A stretch of 64,000 bases of DNA from Oopsacas minuta (Eukaryota; Animalia; Porifera). Position 1 is the first letter of the stretch, and every line of letters starts with the position of its first letter. The notes under the pieces are model-generated. The model had not been told where the DNA came from and did not search any database. It saw only the letters and a list, made by a program, of their open reading frames with translations. A program made the position numbers and the translations under genes. Location: NCBI GenBank assembly GCA_024704765.1, contig JAKMXF010000343.1, forward strand, positions 496,001 to 560,000. Direction: 5' to 3'. Shown here piece by piece: positions 20,523 to 35,400 of the stretch.

Positions 20523-21212
20523 ATGGCAAATGTTGATTTTCCAAAACTTGATGGATTATTATCAGAAAGCGAACGTTCATCTAAACTTGTTTCTTGGATG
20601 GTGTACCCTGAAGAGACGCAGGAAAAGGTTGATGCCGTGTACGGTGATGAAGCTCAACAGTACGAGGAGTTGAGTAATAAATTAGAATACCAAGGTCCCT
20701 CCACTGGTACTGGGATATTCATAAAATTTCTGAAACAGATGTTTAGCAAGGAATGCAACATTCTCGATTTAGGTGCAGGTACTGGTATGTGTGGAGAACT
20801 ACTGAAGAGTGCTGGATATATCAATATGACTGCAATTGACCTCAGTGAGCAAATGCTTGAGGAAGCGAAGAAGAAAGGAATATACAAAGCTGTTGTTCAA
20901 AAAGACCTCAATGAAGATTCTCTAGATGAATTTGAAGGACAATTTGATGCAGTTATTTGTATAGGAGTATTCTTTACTGGTCAAGTTGGACCAAATGCAA
21001 TCGATAAGATATTGAAAGTGATAAAACCAGGAGGAATATTGAGCTTCAGTATACGTACTGATCTCTACGACAACGAAGGGACTGGATACAAGGATAAATG
21101 CGACTTGTTACAACAACAAGGCAAATGGAAGCAACTTAGTTCAGAGATCAACACCTTGTTTGGAAAAATGGATAAGATGGGCTACTATATGACATTCCAA
21201 CGACGTATATAG
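20523..21212 (+). CDS. METTL27/WBSCR27-like SAM-dependent methyltransferase, copy C, intact
   Basis: 229-aa ORF with motif I ILDLGAGTG, IDLSEQML, FDAVICIGVF and IKPGGIL. Confidence 0.9.
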   Translation: MANVDFPKLDGLLSESERSSKLVSWMVYPEETQEKVDAVYGDEAQQYEELSNKLEYQGPSTGTGIFIKFLKQMFSKECNILDLGAGTGMCGELLKSAGYINMTAIDLSEQMLEEAKKKGIYKAVVQKDLNEDSLDEFEGQFDAVICIGVFFTGQVGPNAIDKILKVIKPGGILSFSIRTDLYDNEGTGYKDKCDLLQQQGKWKQLSSEINTLFGKMDKMGYYMTFQRRI

Positions 21213-21745: not shown

Positions 21746-23281
21746 CTATCCCTCTAGGAAAAATCTGAAAATCTGGCATAAATCTGAATATGATCTTTTA
21801 TGGGTATAATCGGGTAGATTCTAGCATCTAGCATAAAGCCAGCATAAATTTGATAAAATTAACATTTTTTTCAATTCTGGAACTCTGATAGGAAAGGTTT
21901 GGATTGCCATATCGTTTCCAACTCAAGTAGTACAAATTACAAATATATAAAATTACTCAGAAATAGTCCAGAACTCAGAATGCAAATCAGCTTAATTAAC
22001 CTTACAATGTTTCCTCTAAGCTAGTTTTATAGACCGACCGACCAGATATTTGTATATGGTGGTGCACTGTGGTGAATTGCATTTGGCAATTAAGTAATTT
22101 TTTATCAGGGAGCTCTACAAATTGATTAATTCTAACATAGATTGATTCAAATCTAAACATTACCGTCTGAAACCATTCAGAGATTAATTATATTGAATAT
22201 CCGGTACCATTTTACTATTTTTACCCTACAATAGTCTGAAAAAGTGCAATTAATGCGCACCACACGAGGTGGTATGTAGGATTTCTCGGTGGTGCACCAC
22301 TTGAGTACACCTCTGAAATTTAATGTACATATACAAGTTATTTTTCATAACTAAAGTAACTTGTATATGTATTAGGAAATGAACGCGACTTCACCTGCAA
22401 GTACCCATTAATTAATAGATTATAAATTTCATATGTCAGCACCAGTATTCTTCTTAAAGGATACTAGTAATTAGGGTATTAGTATAGTGCGAACATTGAT
22501 CGCAAGATCATGATTGTGACCAATTTTTGAGGATCGGAGGAAGATCACGATCATTTTTCCCGGAAAATTTTCGATCATATTTTCGATCGTTATTGGCAGA
22601 CAACGATTTGAAAAATTGCGAATCTAGGCCCAAAAATGTATGTACAAAATCTCCTATTTCAAGATTAACCTAGACGTATAATACGTTCAAATAGATCACG
22701 CATAACGTATTACACGTTATACGCGTATTATAAAACTTAGGAATCAAGTATATACACTATTTGTGTGTTGCCTTGAAATCTAGGAAAGTAAATTCATAAT
22801 TCTCAACTACAGTATCCCATCGAGAATTAATCTCGTTCGTTGCAATTTTCAGGAACTTAACCTCCAAAAAGCGTGGAAGCCAGTATAAATTTAGGTTTTT
22901 GTTCTTTTGCTGTCATAACTTTTGTATTGATTTTCGATAATATTCAAATAACATGTTCGAAAATGTTATATTCATAATATCATTGGGACCCTAATAGCTT
23001 TCCAAATTCCAAATGGAACCAAATTTTATTGTAGAAGGATTGGGAACCACTGTAACCTACACTGTTTTCATTGTCACAGTAATTAGCATTTCACATTGTA
23101 GATTGATTTGTATTTCCTCCACTGCTGGTTTATAAGATGCAGCTAAAAATAGCTATTAACTAGAAATTATATGAAGAAGGAGCGGCGCTAAGCACACAGA
23201 AAGGAGGCACTCCCAGTCAGATGGAACCGGTTGAAATTTTGACCACCCAGTCGAAACTTGACTGGCAATTTGAGATCCCCA

Positions 23282-23832
23282 TATGATCTATTCTATATCA
23301 TATATGATCTATTCTATATCATATATGATCTATTCTATATCATATATAATCTATTCTATATCATATATAATCTATTCTATATCATATATGATCTATTCTA
23401 TATCATATATAATCTATTCTATATCATATATAATCTATTCTATATCATATATAATCTATTCTATATCATATATGATCTATTCTATATCATATATGATCTA
23501 TTCTATATCATATATGATCTATTCTATATCATATATGATCTATTCTATATCATATATGATCTATTCTATATCATATATGATCTATTCTATATCATATATA
23601 ATCTATTCTATATCATATATGATCTATTCTATATCATATATGATCTATTCTATATCATATATGATCTATTCTATATCATATATAATCTATTCTATATCAT
23701 ATATAATCTATTCTATATCATATATAATCTATTCTATATCATATATAATCTATTCTATATCATATATGATCTATTCTATATCATATATGATCTATTCTAT
23801 ATCATATATGATCTATTCTATATCATATATGA
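23282..23832. repeat. 21-bp minisatellite, 26 full units, TAT(G/A)ATCTATTCTATATCATA
   Basis: Counted from sequence and ORF track: 16 G-type and 10 A-type units, no other variation seen. Confidence 0.98.
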
Positions 23833-24466
23833 AATTTGATAGATCTAGGATATCAATGCTCAATAGCATTCTCAATATTATTAAGTACCCATTATGTTAC
23901 TACATTATCTACTACTCGGTTACTTTGTTTGAATTTACATTGACTTCATCTAGTTTTTATCACATTTGTCTTAACTGACCTTTCATTTTTAACTGGGATT
24001 GACAGGTCGGGTTGGATCAGAAATCTCGACTGGTTCCTTCTCTGCTCCCGCTCGTGAAAAAATGACTCCCCTTTTCTTTCTTCCAGAACTAGAGTCACAC
24101 TAGATTGTATTATAAATAATTAATCAGTAAGGACCATTCGACATTCGAGAAATTGCTCTACGTGCAACGTCAAACCAGTTCAAACAATAAGTATGTTAAT
24201 GTGAATTATGTAATATTGTCCCAGTAACCAAATTTTAGCAACAAAATAGATTTTGATACAGGATAACGATAAAATTGTAAATTGTTTGCAATGAATTAGG
24301 AGCGTGCTTCGCTGTGTCTACTCCAAAAATGGAAAGGCGCATCACCATTCGCTCCTGAATCATAAATGGAGCGCTCCTTTAATGCATTGATCAGGACAAA
24401 TGGGTGGTGTCGTCTGCTGTGGTGTCCTAATTATAATCATAATTGATGTAACATTAAATTTAGGTA

Positions 24467-26972
24467 ATGGCTTCAAAAGTTCCAACAGAGGTTCCCAAAC
24501 AAACTTTGAGGAAAAAGGGATAGAGAATTTTATGATAATTTCCAAGAATATACCGGGTATCACAAATCGATCATAATGATCGGAATTACAGGAGCTGGAA
24601 AAAGTACATTTTGTAACTTTTTAGCAAATGAAACAAAATTTGAAGTAAGTTGTGGTTTCGTATCAAAAACGCAACATGCAGGTGCTTGTCAATTCAACTT
24701 CAAATCAGAAGATGTACTCATCATAGATTGTCCAGGATTCTGTGATTCTAAGCGTCCAGCTGAAGACATTCAGGATGAACTTTGCAAAATAGGAGTGATG
24801 GCAAAGGATGGAACTGATGCTGTAGCCATAGTAGTTAATTCAACGGATAGATTCAGCGATAATCATCGAAACGTGCTCAACCAACTAGAATATCTTGGCG
24901 GATCATTGTGGGAACATGCATTCTTAGTTTTCACTAGAGAATCGAAAGTAATAAAAGAATTCGGTGTGAAAAACGGTGATCAATATATTGAGATGATAAG
25001 TAATAGCAAAGAATGTCCACCAGTTTTGACAGAATGGCTAGAAAAGGCGAACAGACGTTATGTCTGTGTTGAAAGCAAAAAGAAATTTCAAAATGAAGAG
25101 TATAGAAACGAAATATGTACCAAGATCTTCAGCATAATTGATGACATACGTAAAAACACGAACAATGAGAGATACAACAATTCTGTGATGAAGCAAGGAG
25201 CCAAATTCTTTAGACATATTATGGAAGCAAGAAGCACTACACTAGGAATGCAAAAATTAGTAATACGAATGGAGCAACAGCGGGAACAAGATAAGAAAAC
25301 GATTGCAGAGGCACAAAGGAAGCTCGAAGAAACACTAAAAGCAGCAAATGAAAAAAATGAGGAAGACATTAAAAGGATTGAACAAGCACAAAATGAAATT
25401 AAGAAAATGAACAAAATGATGGACCAAACTATAAAGGGCAATGAATTGAAGCATGCTCAATTGAAGATAGACAAACTAGAATGTGAAATGGCACAAAAGA
25501 TTGAAATTGACAGATTAAAAGCTGAAGTTGAGAAAGCTTACGCTAACAATAAAAGTAAAAGTAGTTGTTTTTCTCATCAAACAAAGATCATGTTATCAAC
25601 AGGAGAACTAAGCGATATTAGCAACATTAAAGCAGGAGACATGGTATTTACACCAAATGGTCCTAGGAAAGTTGCTGTCCTCTCAATGATCAAGAGATAC
25701 AAAGATAATATATACAGCATTGACAACAGAGATTTTCAATTTAACAAATATCATCCCTTCGTTGCTTTTACAACAACAAACAATAAACAGACATCTTTTG
25801 CTGTTATCGATGTCAATGGGTTCATTAACTTCATGCCTACCATGGCAGCAAGAAATATAAAGAGCCTATACGCCAGAGACACTAGGTTATCTGGTTATTG
25901 TAAAGAAGGTCTGTGTCCTATCTTAATTCAATCGATTTCAAAGAGTGGAGAAGATTTACTTCCAGAGTACGATATCCTTTATGATGTCATTCTAGAACCA
26001 AACGGAACAGGAATTAATGAGTATTTTGCTGGAGATGTCAATCAGGTATTTCTCGTATCTTCCGAAATATCAATGTATACGCTGGAATCCGAACGTCAAT
26101 ACATACCTGCTTACATAGCAATACTTTACATCATCAACAGGACATCACAACAACAAGCTGTGTATTCTAGTAGCATGCTAAACACAGAGAATGACGTTAT
26201 CAACTTCTTCGCAAACGAAATTATCCAAGATGATGGAATTACTCTACTGACAAACGCATTATTGAAAATGTCACCTTATCAATCACTCAATCTCACAAAC
26301 ACTCCTATCACAATAAAAGAAATTGAAAAACATCTCAAGCGAACTCTAAGTTTCTTTGCAGAACCAAAGCCTATAGCTGTAACAACTTTGTCTCTGATTT
26401 ATGAGTATTTGCAGGAACTTATTGGACCAATTCACACAATGATCAAGTTGGGATGGAGGACATACGCGCCTACAGAGGAAAGAGAACAACTGGCAGTTGG
26501 AATTGCAGACATTGCATTCATCAGTGAAGAATGTTTCTCTCTGCCAATTGAAATAATGCTCATGACAGATACTGATCAAGTACCATACAAGATGGAAGAA
26601 AAGAAAAATAACAAAAACTCGAGAATGAGGCCCATTGTGGACACAATATATATTCCATTTAATCAAGCAGAGGATGACAAGCTATACTTCATTGTGAAGG
26701 AGAAAAATACTTCAAATATTATTGCTAGAAAATGCATCAGACTTAATCCAGACTTCGCCTATGATTACAGATTGTTGAGATTATTCTCATCTGGCAAATT
26801 CAACATTTCGGAAGTAAGAGTAAACCTAGACATCAGAACTATGTCTACTGAGCAAATGAAGCGGGAAATAACAGCAAAACATGACTGGAACGAAGATTTA
26901 GAAATAAATTTCGCAGAGATATTCGCTTCTAATATTGTTGACATCTTAGTGGAGAAAGTGAAGGCTCTGTGA
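24467..26972 (+). CDS. AIG1/GIMAP-family GTPase + coiled coil + Hint (hedgehog/intein) domain + unknown C-terminal region; intronless
   Basis: ORF 24576-26972: G1 GITGAGKST, G3 IIDCPGFCD, LVFTR, coiled coil, then SS|CFSHQTKIMLSTGE..IKAGDMV, NKYHPF, LYDVIL and YFAG..LVSSE. The likely true ATG is at 24467, joined by removing one base in the A5G3 run at 24512-19. Confidence 0.85.
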
Positions 26973-27174
26973 AAACATAATTAATATAAGTGCTTAGTTA
27001 TCGGCTATTAGTTTAAGCCCCCTTTAGTTGTGGTCATAGGCCATTACTAGTTCCCTAGTCTTGTAGTATCGTCTTTTAGACTGTAGTATTTTGTATATCT
27101 TGTATTGTACAAATGTTTTTATTAAAGGTAATCTCAAACAAAATATTTAATGAATAGTACGTATTTGGCGAATA

Positions 27175-28510
27175 CAGGATGTTTCACAATTGATGTCGTA
27201 TTTTCTAAATTTGTTTATTATGCACCCATGCAATAATATCTGTGTATTTAAACTTGCAATCGTAATTAATCTTACAGGGTTCTATTGAGTAATTATTTCA
27301 TTCATCAATCGAAACATTTTATAGCTTCTATTTCCATATCCAAATTGGGCTAATTATTTGCATAATATAATGGTGAAAGAATACAGTATCATGATTCGCT
27401 CACAGGCTGTTGGCATGCTACAAGCTGGCTCTTCTCAGAAGTTTGTGTCTCTTAAACTTGGAGTTAATATCCGTACAGTTCAGCGTTGGTGGCGACTTTT
27501 CAAGAATGATTTGACATTAGAAAACAAAGGGGGACGTGGCCGTAAATCGTCCATATCGAAAGTTGCCAAGATTGTAATTACTAAATCAATTGGCAAAAAA
27601 CGACAGTCTGTACGTGGTCTATCCAAGAAATTAAAGTTGAAAGGTCATTCCGTATCTCAGAGTACAGTGTACCGTTATTTGACAAAAGAAAAGGGCGTAA
27701 AATCTTACAAACGCCAGCGGCAGCCGTTAATAACAGAGAAAAACATGGCTGCTAGGTTAAAATTTTGTAAAGAACGTGTCAATTGGACAGCAAATGATTG
27801 GAAAAACATATTATTTACAGATGAATCACCGTTTGAGTTAAATCATCCCCCAAACAGGAAAAATGATTGTGTTTGGGCGAGAAACGCATTGGATGTCGAG
27901 CCCGTTCAGATGGTGAAATTTCCAAAGAAAATTCAAGTATGGGGTATGATGTCACATCGTGCACTGTCGGAGTTACATTTCATTCCCGTTGGACAAACTG
28001 TATCTGCAGAGTACTATGTTAGTGAGATACTGGGTAAAACTTTAATGTCTACAATGAACAGAAAGCGAGAAAGAGGCACAGTTATTGAGAGGAAAATGTT
28101 AAAAAATATGTCTCGTGCGATATTTCAACAAGATGGCGCTCCAGCTCACACGGCAAACATGACACAAAATTGGTTGAGAAGTAACCTAAAGAGTTTTGGG
28201 GCGAAAGGTACCTGGCCAGCCAACTCTCCAGACTTGAGTCCCATTGAGAACATATGGTCGATTTTGAAAGATGATCTAGATTTAATAGGTGAGATAAAAG
28301 ACATCAAAATGTTGGAAAATCGACTGAAAACAGCATGGTCCAATATTTCACCAGAGGTTTTGGACAAATTGATGGATGGAATGCCAAAACGAATCCATAA
28401 GTGTATTGAACTTAGTGGTGGATATATTGGCAAATAATTGTAGTAATATATCTAGTATTCTATTAGTTATGTAATATTGTATAACACGACATCAATTGTG
28501 AAACACCCTG
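27175..28510 (+). mobile_element. IS630-Tc1-mariner DNA transposon, DD37E type, 1,336 bp, apparently intact
   Basis: 25-bp TIRs CAGG(A/G)TGTTTCACAATTGATGTCGT with one mismatch (27175-99, 28486-510). TA flanks at 27173-74 and 28511-12. Confidence 0.95.
27370..28437 (+). CDS. Tc1-like DD37E transposase, uninterrupted 355-aa frame
   Basis: HTH region with GRGRK, FTDES, QDGAPAH and SPDLSPIENIW. 37 residues between the second D and E (hand count). Confidence 0.92.
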   Translation: MVKEYSIMIRSQAVGMLQAGSSQKFVSLKLGVNIRTVQRWWRLFKNDLTLENKGGRGRKSSISKVAKIVITKSIGKKRQSVRGLSKKLKLKGHSVSQSTVYRYLTKEKGVKSYKRQRQPLITEKNMAARLKFCKERVNWTANDWKNILFTDESPFELNHPPNRKNDCVWARNALDVEPVQMVKFPKKIQVWGMMSHRALSELHFIPVGQTVSAEYYVSEILGKTLMSTMNRKRERGTVIERKMLKNMSRAIFQQDGAPAHTANMTQNWLRSNLKSFGAKGTWPANSPDLSPIENIWSILKDDLDLIGEIKDIKMLENRLKTAWSNISPEVLDKLMDGMPKRIHKCIELSGGYIGK

Positions 28511-32400: not shown

Positions 32401-35400
32401 TCAAAAGCCAAGCCGGGCCGAGCCGAGCCGAGCCAAATCTCAACTGGAACTGAATCAGACTAAAAACCTGAACAGGATTCCAACTCAGCTCTATTACGGA
32501 AAAATTAGCGATAATTGGATGAATACATTTGCCCGATATTCTGCTAGTTTAGTGAGGTGCCCAGATAAGGATATTCGTTGCATACGTACAGTAACAGTTG
32601 CAATCGGGCAGGTTTTTCAGGTCCGAATTCCTTTTCTTTGGCCAGAACCCGGACGACCCGACGCATGCGAACTACATAGTATAGAATAATATTATTGAAT
32701 GAAAACTGATGAAGCAGAACGTACAGTCAGAAATTGTGTTAGATAATAACTTGATTTACATCCTATAAAAGGAATAAGATGAAAATATTTCGAATATTAA
32801 TTGCCGTCTATTTGGGACCCTAATGTACAGGACCGAAGCCGGCTCATGCCGGGTTTACGACCTCATGAGAAATCCAATTCGTCGAGATAACGGATGGCAA
32901 CATTACTGTAATATAACGTACTGATATACATCCGTTATAGAGAGGAGATTCATCTTGTGATGCTGAGCTGCAAGAAAGACGGGGCTCTCTATCAGTTGGA
33001 TACTGAATTACTGAGCTAGTAGATATGGACCAAGAAGCTTCAGGGTTATCAAATATCTGAAAAATATATGTAAACACATTACTACAGTCGGTAGAGAATA
33101 AACAAAAACACAAATACAAGTACAAATAGAGCATATGTGTGATTCAATGCTTATTGTTTGATACTCACATTAACACTTTTGTCTCTACAGCAAGTGACAA
33201 GGAATGGAGTTTTCTCTTTCTTTGTTCCGTAGTATATTCGTGTGATAGCAGAGGAATTACCAATGAATTTACCAATACATTTAGCACTATAGGATAGAAT
33301 TACAATCAACATCTGTAACTCGAATGCCCGTTAACTGAAACATTCTTTATCCCGAAAGAATATTCACTTCCCTTCGTTGTACTTTTAATACTTATCGCAT
33401 CCGTTAACCCGAACAGATTTTGATTTCCCCTGAGGTTCGAGTTACCGGATGTTGACTGTATTAAGAGGAAAATACAAATCTAATAAATGATACAACTCAC
33501 TTAATAGCAATTATATTAGAACCATAGTTAACAAGCTAAATAACCCATAGTCTCAGTTCTTATTACACCAAGTAGAATCAACCTTGATTACCGTATTGCC
33601 CTGAATAAGCGTCGGAGTAGAACAGGATAAGGTCCGAATCTTGGAAACCTGGCTTGTGTATATTGCTAATTTACGTATGTATTGATTAATGTATTGTAAG
33701 TGAAGAACATGCTCACGGTTATATCTTCCAAAAGATATCTACATACATGGCTGGGGGCTTGCTTATTCAGGGAAATACGGTATCTTGATTGTACGTTCCG
33801 CGAATGCTTTTGGATGGTCACAACATGTTCGGATATTCGAAGCTGGACAATAATGATTTCCAAGGATGGACATACTTGTAGGTACTTTTCAATTACCTTA
33901 ATAAATCCCATACAATAACATCTGTACCAGAAGCAACATATAAGATGTTTGGATCAGTTGATGTTGATAGATCTTGGAGGACAGCCATATCATCAGATAT
34001 TTTACTAGACACAATAATAGTATAATTCATATAACAACCATTAAAGGTATTATCCTACTTATGAAATAATATGAACATAGAACATACTTGAGTTCATAAA
34101 TAGGGTCTGGAGTTCTCATATCAAATATCTGTAAATATAAATAAAAATATAATATATTTTAGGATAAATTACAAAACAAACGTAAAAATGTGAAATAAAA
34201 TATTATAAATCAAAAAAAGTTGATAGCAGATGGCTTCGTTGAAACAGCAACAATCTTCCCAAGCGAATTAACACACAAACCGTAAAAACATTGCATTTTA
34301 TCTTTCACTCCCACTTCACCATGCTTGTCTAACAAACGCACATTTTTATCAAAAATATTAATAATCCCTCCATAGCAAGACATTACTATCCTCTCATCTC
34401 GGTCTACACAGAAGAATCCAGTAGGCATTACATTACAATTGTAGCCGTTTGGTAAATGTGCTCTCTGCTCACCTGAAGTACTCATTATGAAGAGACAAGG
34501 GTTAGAATCACAGAGCAAATACATTTTGTTGCTAGTAAACTCAATATTGAGTGGCTTTTTTATATTATCCCATGTGAGAGCTCTTACGAATTCAAGATTA
34601 GCTTTGTAGATAACTACACGATCATTCGCATGATCACAAATGTATATGAAATCGTCTTGATTGATAGCTAAGCCTTTTGGCGTGTCTAGCTCATTGCTAG
34701 CCCTTCCTTTCTTACCGACCCGATCTATGAATTCTTTCGTCTTCACGTCAAATGCCAGTACAGAATGTAGTTCAGTGTCAGTTACATATATCAGGTTAGA
34801 CACTATTAACAACCCGTGGGGTTCCTTTAGCTGAGCCTCTCCTATGGTATCAACAACTTTTCCACTTGATCCACATACCTTAACGCATTCATTCCCAAGA
34901 TCTGCTATATAAATACGTCCACTCGCGCGGTGGATAGCTAGATCCTTGGGGAGACGAAAATCCTCTGTATTATGTTTTCCAGTGGACACTATCGGCTTGT
35001 CTTCTATCAAGATTTCTAATTTAATCGCTGAAGAAATGGACTTTAGGATCGGATCTATATCGAACTTAAATTTTCCCCTAACTCGACTATTTAGGCAAGG
35101 ATCTGTACTATCTGCGAAAGTCTTACGTATGGAGCTAATCTTACTCTGCATAAGCTTTTGATGATATGAAACCATGTCGATTAGTATCTGACATTTAGTA
35201 TTCAATTCTTGTTCAATACGATTGAGTTCTGAGGAAAACGAATAGTCGTATGTAGCCATTATAATAGTGGAAATGAAGTAGGAATCTTATTAATATGACA
35301 GCAGTGATAACAATTCTATACTTATAGTTGTGTATAATAATCATAGAGACTACTGTAACTATTCAAAGTATCAGATAATAGTTCAATTATATTATCACCA

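Follow-up and report, generated by a model that had tools for sequence, protein, structure and literature searches.

The 64,000-nucleotide stretch of DNA analyzed here, referred to as the window, is taken from the glass sponge Oopsacas minuta (assembly GCA_024704765.1, contig JAKMXF010000343.1, positions 496,001 to 560,000 of the forward strand) and contains a gene for a GTPase of the AIG1/GIMAP type that continues into a Hint domain and a further module of about 300 residues. As judged from the sequence, the GTPase and its stalk are fused at Ser330/Cys331 to an autoprocessing cassette, and autoprocessing at this bond is predicted with somewhat better than even confidence. The gene is read from a single uninterrupted open reading frame (ORF) in DNA with a guanine-plus-cytosine (GC) content of ~36%, the same as that of its flanks, and a second, intact copy is found elsewhere in the genome. 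The encoded protein, P0001, adopts a modular architecture comprising the following features, given in window coordinates:

24576..26972, plus strand: main ORF, 798 codons and a stop codon, from the ORF scan
24576..25196, plus strand: AIG1/GIMAP GTPase, residues 1–207, with P-loop GITGAGKS, DCPG and FTRES, from the Pfam AIG1 match
25209..25550, plus strand: charged, coiled-coil-like linker, residues ~212–325, of variable length among paralogues, from composition and alignment
25563..25568, plus strand: predicted scissile junction Ser330/Cys331, from conservation and alignment to Cys1 of inteins and Cys258 of Hedgehog
25566..26066, plus strand: predicted Hint domain, BIL/Vint-like, residues 331–497, with C331, N390-x-x-H393-P394, Y469-D470 and the end S495-S496-E497
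26085..26447, plus strand: predicted helical domain, residues ~504–624, ending just before the near-invariant G626-W627-R628, from helices at model residues 187–307
26481..26849, plus strand: predicted C2-like eight-stranded β-sandwich, residues ~636–758, with conserved D752 and R754, from the fold, with strands at model residues 321–439
26847..26969, plus strand: predicted C-terminal helical hairpin, residues ~758–798, with W771 conserved in 60 of 64 non-sponge relatives, from helices at model residues 441–480

The N-terminal domain of P0001 is a GTPase of the GIMAP type, as an earlier note on this DNA, made from the sequence alone, had recognized. Residues 1–207 match Pfam AIG1 (PF04548) with an E value of 1.2e-23 and 84.1 bits (cutoff 27), and the best relatives of solved structure are GIMAP7, GIMAP4, GIMAP2 and GIMAP5. 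The G motifs are intact: GITGAGKS, DCPG and FTRES align to GKTGSGKS, DTPG and FTRKEE of GIMAP7 and are invariant among the paralogues. The linker that follows, residues 212–325, consists of E, K, R, D and Q to 49%, contains indels of 57 and ~80 alignment columns among paralogues and is the fastest-evolving segment of the gene, with a ratio of nonsynonymous to synonymous substitution rates (dN/dS) of 0.53 averaged over the lineages of the two genomic copies. Its composition, variable length and fast evolution fit a coiled-coil stalk, and a coiled coil after the G domain is the feature by which GIMAP proteins have been defined (PMC7053062). The coiled coil proposed in the earlier note corresponds to this charged, coiled-coil-like segment. 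The N termini of the intact paralogues are polar. Since no transmembrane-like or signal-like segment is present in the protein (maximum KD19 value 1.34; no dedicated signal-peptide predictor was run), the protein is presumably cytosolic. Many GIMAPs rely on a C-terminal membrane anchor.

The region from Cys331 to approximately residue 497, ~167 residues in length, is predicted to form a complete Hint fold. The earlier note had placed the start of a Hint-like domain of this length at Cys331, codon 25566–25568, and had named the absence of a predicted Hint fold beforehand as one of the results that would refute its proposal; the fold is predicted. An AlphaFold model calculated with 10 close paralogues was unusable, with a mean predicted local distance difference test (pLDDT) score of 45.8, and was replaced by a model from a 69-sequence alignment of the wider family, which is confident as a single body (pLDDT 88.8, predicted template modeling score 0.89). 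The closest structures to the modeled Hint domain are the BIL2 domain of Tetrahymena BUBL (6y75; Z 17.4, root mean square deviation (rmsd) 2.4 over 144 residues) and a BIL domain of Clostridium thermocellum (Z 15.2), followed by mini-inteins at about Z 14.5, DnaB among them at 14.6, and by the Hedgehog domain HhC (1at0; Z 13.5). The structural alignment spans model residues 10–184, which correspond to protein residues 327–501, and starts at Cys1 of the targets, with Cys331 placed on Cys258 of Hedgehog. A shape search of the Atlas with the AlphaFold model retrieved generic Hint proteins only, and the Atlas feature searches were blank.

Sequence comparisons place the start of the Hint domain at the same residue. 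The Pfam Vint model (PF14623) is matched from residue 330 or 331 with 26.5–28.6 bits against a cutoff of 27, and all 10 of 10 paralogues match it, with a best E value of 6.4e-9; a match to Hom_end_hint in the Pfam scan of the protein is sub-threshold. A profile of 69 family members matches the N terminus of the PI-SceI intein with an E value of 1.4e-11 and Prp8 inteins with 6e-7, with Cys331 on intein Cys1. No match was found to PDB sequences when the Hint domain and C terminus were searched with phmmer. The profile also gives a second match, of Hint positions 38–99 within AIG1, which lacks significance (independent E value 0.05–6.5).

The residues expected of the first step of Hint chemistry are conserved throughout the family, whose 69 aligned sequences, 64 of them non-sponge, share ~20% identity. 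Counts in the following list refer to these 64 non-sponge members:

Position −1: Ser330 in the sponge protein, invariant in sponge copies; Ser in 56 of 64
Nucleophile: Cys331, invariant in sponge copies; Cys in 63 of 64
Block B, three residues before the His: Asn390, invariant in sponge copies; Thr in 54 of 64
Block B His: His393, invariant in sponge copies; His in 60 of 64
Residue after the block B His: Pro394, invariant in sponge copies; Pro in 64 of 64
L-Y-D-(L/V)-I-L, resembling intein block F: Asp470, invariant in sponge copies; Asp in 63 of 64
After the last strand, (F/L)-L-V-x-S-E: Glu497, invariant in sponge copies; Glu in 64 of 64

Block B of the wider family reads F-T-x-x-H-P-F. The motifs that the earlier note had singled out in the window copy (CFSHQTKI, NKYH with Asn for Thr and the His kept, LYDVIL and LVSSE) are all present and conserved. 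The domain's C-terminal end differs from that of inteins, again as described in the note: the His-Asn pair and the +1 Cys are absent. Model residue 179 (Ser496), the last one aligned, superposes on the terminal residue of several inteins, so Glu497 would occupy the +1 site, and both the C-terminal Asn and a Cys, Ser or Thr nucleophile at +1 are missing, with Ser496 and the invariant Glu497 in their place. By these residues the Hint domain retains what is needed for the N-S acyl shift and has lost what is needed for Asn cyclization and extein ligation. Since the terminal Asn and the +1 nucleophile are absent and the first-step residues are kept, splicing is not plausible, and N-terminal cleavage or transfer to an outside nucleophile is. 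The preference of the earlier note for cleavage or ligation over splicing follows, to this extent, from Ser496 on the terminal Asn position and Glu497 at +1.

For the same reasons it is very improbable that the Hint domain is an intein, that is, a selfish splicing element inserted into a host protein, even though its best sequence matches are to the N termini of the PI-SceI and Prp8 inteins and mini-inteins are matched in fold at Z of about 14.5. Ser496 stands at the position of the terminal Asn and an invariant Glu497 at +1, no homing endonuclease is present, and the sequence behind the Hint domain always accompanies it while the sequence in front differs, the reverse of what a conserved host protein with an inserted element would show.

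C-terminal to the Hint domain, the ~300 further residues, in which the earlier note had seen a beta-rich segment, resolve in the model into three parts: helices forming a domain, then a C2-like sandwich, then a hairpin of helices. In VIA the sandwich overlays with a Trichomonas C2 domain (9zk6) with Z 13.1 and an rmsd of 2.5, with 117 of 126 residues aligned, and Foldseek pairs it, at template modeling (TM) scores of 0.6–0.74, with C2 domains of otoferlin (C2A), PKC-epsilon, cPLA2, E-Syt and Munc13. A weak resemblance to C2 domains is likewise seen in the poorer model held by the Atlas. The C2 model of Pfam (PF00168) is not matched at E ≤ 1, and the C-terminal module matches no family in Pfam, NCBIfam or PADLOC; the sandwich is C2-like by its predicted fold only.

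In the mechanism proposed for this architecture, Cys331 would attack the carbonyl of Ser330 in an N-S acyl shift, aided by His393 and Asp470, to give a thioester. Because the Hint domain has neither the terminal Asn nor the +1 nucleophile of inteins, resolution of this thioester would fall to a nucleophile from outside. The GTPase and stalk would thereby be parted from the Hint-C2 portion, leaving as a free fragment if the nucleophile is water, or else becoming ligated to a molecule that the helical and C2-like module presents, and the C2-like domain would probably direct the reaction to a membrane or a partner. The ligation variant is made credible by two precedents: in Hedgehog, the cargo is transferred to cholesterol bound at the interface of Hint and SRR (PMC9163320), and in Tetrahymena BIL2, an upstream ubiquitin-like domain is joined, in an ATP-independent reaction, to lysine residues of other proteins (PMC8616854). 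By analogy with these systems, covalent ligation of the sponge GTPase to a lipid or protein can be envisaged, although it is considered quite unlikely. An extended form of the proposal is also improbable, namely that the cassette is an ATP-independent conjugation device in which, once the C2-like and helical portion has docked to a membrane or target, a lipid head group or protein lysine resolves the Cys331 thioester and covalently anchors the GTPase-stalk (self-lipidation or self-conjugation), the cassette having been captured by glass sponges from a bacterial mobile two-gene conflict system and coupled to a GTPase of innate immunity.

Several observations count against the proposed autoprocessing. 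The Pfam Vint match covers only positions 1–63 of 166 in the profile, at threshold. Two residues near conserved Hint positions are altered in the sponge copies, and the active site may have changed with them: Asn390 (25743–25745) replaces the Thr of the TxxH block that is found in 54 of 64 family members, and Asp377 (25704–25706) replaces a near-invariant Arg (60 of 64). The window copy is also without ~36 N-terminal residues of the intact paralogues, the full N terminus that precedes the P-loop being absent. Finally, the C2 label comes from the fold alone, and lipid binding and the identity of the acceptor are guesses. With T390N and R377D lying near conserved Hint positions and the Pfam match to Hint models being partial, the Hint domain might be a catalytically dead structural adaptor, the protein staying whole and the Hint-helical-C2 portion anchoring or regulating the GTPase. 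This alternative is fairly unlikely, given that Cys331, His393, Pro394, Asp470 and Glu497 do not vary among the sponge paralogues and hardly vary in a family of ~20% identity, and that the N-terminal domain has been swapped exactly at the Ser-Cys junction, as expected of a functional boundary.

This swap is visualized by comparison of the sponge proteins with their relatives. The earlier note had called the C-terminal module unknown; besides resolving into three parts, the module travels with the Hint domain in a mostly bacterial family. An exhaustive profile search with the Hint domain and C terminus yielded 167 representatives at E ≤ 1e-3, 89 of them at E ≤ 1e-10. Most of the 150 best of these 167 matches are ~750–830 residues long, with the Hint domain starting at residues 280–350, and 77 proteins can be aligned from the Hint start through the C-terminal hairpin. 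In sequence terms, the Hint, helical and C2-like domains and the hairpin constitute one evolutionary unit. Two types of N-terminal domain were distinguished: 117 of 134 long N termini belong to one homologous family of ~290 residues, and only the 11 sponge proteins have AIG1 instead. The ~290-residue domain has no match in Pfam, NCBIfam or PADLOC, and its structural neighbors in the Atlas, from a poor underlying model, are all weak (TM score ≤ 0.32). It ends in the sequence QPGxxYRxxPSSSCF, and the sponge and non-sponge proteins become alignable again at [S/G]-S-C-F. Because both types of protein become alignable at this point, the N-terminal cargo has been exchanged in glass sponges right up to the predicted scissile bond, the Ser-Cys junction, with the GTPase in place of the family's usual ~290-residue domain. 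In Hog proteins, new N termini have likewise evolved repeatedly and the cargo is replaceable (PMC2362128). The changes R377D and T390N are two sponge-lineage changes in the Hint domain that accompany the cargo swap.

The non-sponge members that are named or identified from their genomic context are bacterial, with the addition of an amoeba and a hemichordate. They include:

Alkalihalobacillus sp. AL-G, WP_304978003
Actinocrinis puniceicyclus, KGA66_04990
an alphaproteobacterial metagenome-assembled genome
the amoeba Willaertia magna, KAL9645931, two copies
the hemichordate Ptychodera flava, XP_070567577

One further member lies between recO and glyQS on a Firmicute-like contig. A search for related loci with a 5-sequence alignment gave seven bacterial loci, the best of which (L006) looks fragmented and was not used for context. 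In a quick, unrooted tree, the sponge clade sits on a long branch (1.49), and its sister group, to which the protein from Ptychodera belongs, is placed there with moderate support (Shimodaira–Hasegawa-like approximate likelihood ratio test 89). Five weaker matches of the profile search (P0106, P0101, P0131, P0132 and P0149) contain two to five tandem matches to the N-terminal part of Hint; they are poly-Hint proteins unrelated to the C terminus of the cassette. P0106 has five Hom_end_hint stretches with overlapping AXH and PT-HINT matches.

In all three of the genomic contexts inspected, two bacterial and one apparently eukaryotic, the family gene directly follows a gene for a protein of 1242–1486 residues. 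The partner genes are:

L003:3979-7842: partner gene, upstream of P0011
L013:5416-9144: partner gene, upstream of P0172
partner gene also read in the context of P0064

The two partners that were compared, one from a Firmicute-like and the other from a eukaryote-like contig, show homology over their full length (E 2e-95). In the bacterial partner at least four transmembrane-like segments are present, around residues 760–990. The partner protein has no match in Pfam, NCBIfam or PADLOC, and a search of the sponge genome with a single query did not detect it. From the gene order, the large partner and the Hint-C2 gene look like an undescribed two-gene system. Patchy distribution and a conserved two-gene arrangement are typical of mobile conflict systems, and because the family is spread patchily over bacteria and scattered eukaryotes with a conserved order of the two genes, we infer that it is such a system. 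It is likely that a part of a bacterial conflict system has been recruited into animal immunity.

The combination of AIG1 and Hint as such is already known; whether it had been reported was a question raised in the earlier note. AIG1 with a C-terminal Hint domain has been described in Acropora millepora (PMC3723955) and Biomphalaria glabrata (PMC7053062), and CARD+AIG1+HINT proteins have been described in amphioxus and some fungi (PMC12373286). For the coral proteins, the domain was given as pfam01079 and protein splicing was inferred (PMC3723955); for those of the snail, the term used is hint/hedgehog domain (PMC7053062). Similar to the sponge protein, the coral, snail, amphioxus and fungal proteins have an immune-type AIG1 domain followed by Hint, are lineage-specific and are known from domain annotation only. 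Differences from the coral and snail proteins are the BIL/Vint-like nature of the sponge Hint domain and the ~300-residue helical, C2-like and hairpin module behind it; the Hedgehog-type PF01079 is not listed for the sponge protein at E ≤ 1 in Pfam. Since no AIG1 protein from outside the sponges is found among the 150 best matches of the profile for the Hint domain and C terminus, the sponge fusion appears, by sequence, to be independent of those in coral, snail and amphioxus. The literature searched contains no description of a sponge AIG1-Hint protein, of this type of Hint with its obligatory helical, C2-like and hairpin extension, of the invariant +1 Glu or of the wider family, bacterial for the most part, and the large protein that partners it.

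Several other autoprocessing systems are comparable in part. Similar to Hedgehog and Hog proteins, the sponge protein consists of an N-terminal cargo, a Cys-initiated Hint domain without a C-terminal Asn and a C-terminal region that possibly presents the acceptor; the cargo is replaceable in both (PMC2362128), and the folds overlay with Z 13.5 and both Cys residues aligned. Unlike Hedgehog and Hog proteins, the sponge protein has no signal-like segment and no PF01079 match, and its C-terminal region is ~300 residues long with a C2-like sandwich, whereas that of Hedgehog is the short helix-loop-helix SRR. BIL2 (6y75 and 6tmm) and the bacterial BIL domains are the closest in structure (Z 17.4 and 15.2). 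BIL2, however, keeps the terminal Asn (N143A being the mutant that was crystallized) and has ubiquitin-like domains on its flanks, whereas the sponge Hint domain has Ser496 in place of Asn, followed by the invariant Glu, and carries a GTPase as cargo. The best Pfam match to the N-terminal half of the Hint domain is the Vint domain of VWA-Vint proteins (PF14623; PMC2362128), which are thought to be intracellular and are without the late motifs of intein and Hog proteins (PMC2362128). In contrast to VWA-Vint proteins, in addition to the partial match described above, the sponge protein has no VWA or Vwaint domain and has AIG1 upstream. The ~780-residue proteins of the N-domain-Hint-helical-C2 type share the cassette end to end, including the same near-invariant residues; they differ in the unrelated ~290-residue N-terminal domain and in the large partner gene upstream in the three contexts inspected.

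The mode of action of GIMAP/AIG1 GTPases is poorly understood; the proteins usually depend on a C-terminal membrane anchor. An anchor-like C2 module behind a self-cleaving Hint domain would suggest switchable or covalent attachment to, or release from, a membrane, and a C2 cassette that is cleavable or ligating could replace or regulate the GIMAP membrane anchor. The Hint domain with its helical and C2-like domains and its invariant Glu at the intein +1 position defines a new Hint family, distributed over bacteria and, among eukaryotes, glass sponges, one hemichordate and one amoeba; the cassette is a further example of cargo swapping in autoprocessing outside Hedgehog.

The gene belongs to the sponge and does not stem from bacterial contamination, because its flanks are eukaryotic, three tandem copies are found in another sponge-type assembly and two copies are present in this genome (61.46 Mb in 365 contigs). 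A contaminant or an assembly chimera might have been suspected, given that relatives of the Hint-C2 cassette with a named or context-derived origin are mostly bacterial. This explanation is hardly credible: the GC content equals that of the flanks, the contig that hosts the gene is 1.14 Mb long, the neighboring ORFs encode a Tc1/mariner transposase and an NHL-repeat protein, and the AIG1 domain belongs with the GIMAPs of eukaryotes. Moreover, independent read-derived contigs of three runs cross the GTPase-Hint junction unbroken. The paralogue, on contig C110, is intact (protein P0002), shares 81% identity with the window copy over the Hint and C-terminal part, and has an ORF whose N-terminal residues are identical to those of the Oopsacas minuta NCBI protein LOD99_15641. 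Eight more full-length relatives, with 65–70% identity, come from other assemblies, and the three tandem copies of the other sponge-type assembly are bounded by exons of ribosomal protein L4 and a protein-kinase gene.

Both genomic paralogues are, by substitution rates, under purifying selection in every segment, because dN/dS between them is 0.19–0.53 per segment and 0.32 overall, figures that average both lineages. The synonymous rate dS between the two (window 25566–26450 versus L002) is 0.25 in the Hint and helical parts and 0.54–0.61 in the AIG1 and C2-like parts, and read contigs derived from the paralogue map onto the window copy in this middle part only. The approximate halving of dS suggests gene conversion between the two genomic copies over the middle of the gene.

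The 5' end of the window copy is frameshifted, as the following features show:

24467..24523, plus strand: the original ATG with the 18 codons it opens (MASK...), a frame closed by TAG and now different from that of the main ORF, from sequence reading
24517..24519, plus strand: GGG run with one G more than in a ~94%-identical relative, the frameshift site, from comparison of read contigs

The start at 24467 given in the earlier note is indeed an ATG, but it lies in another frame than the main ORF, and its own frame stops after 18 codons. The N terminus of the intact paralogues reads MA.K...F.DNF.EYTGYKRSIFMIGITGAGKS, and the window encodes the same N-terminal residues divided over two frames at the GGG run. 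Contigs of runs X1, X3 and X4, all from one sample, match the window exactly at 24517–24519. In the contig of run X5 (organism B, another organism or sample, ~94% identical), there is one base fewer at 24517, and ATG 24467 is in frame with the main ORF. The 1-nucleotide insertion in the sequenced individual is real, because it is present in each of the source sample's three runs and absent from the ~94%-identical relative. The only start left for a product is the Met at 24576, four residues upstream of the P-loop glycine.

By its sequence, the window copy may be impaired or becoming a pseudogene. A stronger version of this view is that it is a recently inactivated pseudogene, which would leave the paralogue on the other contig as the sole functional copy; the extra G, which shifts ATG 24467 out of frame in every run of the source sample but not in the relative, speaks for it, as does a search for RNA runs, which turned up none containing the locus. 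This possibility is a serious one, yet on balance doubtful. In a genome of 36% GC, the 798 codons that are left form an unbroken frame, an in-frame Met is present just before the P-loop, the other indels relative to the ~94%-identical sequence are in frame (+6 and −3 nucleotides) or paired (−1 and +1, 4 nucleotides apart), and dN/dS relative to the paralogue is low overall, though averaged across both lineages.

A minisatellite, made up of 26 copies of a 21-bp unit that are 98% identical, occupies window positions 23281–23832, ~640 bp upstream of the original ATG 24467, and gives rise to long artefactual ORFs at 23258–23978. An intact 359-codon ORF for a Tc1/mariner-type transposase (HTH_Tnp_Tc3_2 and DDE_3) lies at 27358–28437, ~390 bp downstream of the gene, and read depth increases ~tenfold starting at 27113, as expected of a repeated element. 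Further away, the ORF at 20523–21212 encodes a class I S-adenosylmethionine-dependent methyltransferase domain, and the ORF at 34210–35259, on the minus strand, encodes an NHL-repeat β-propeller protein.

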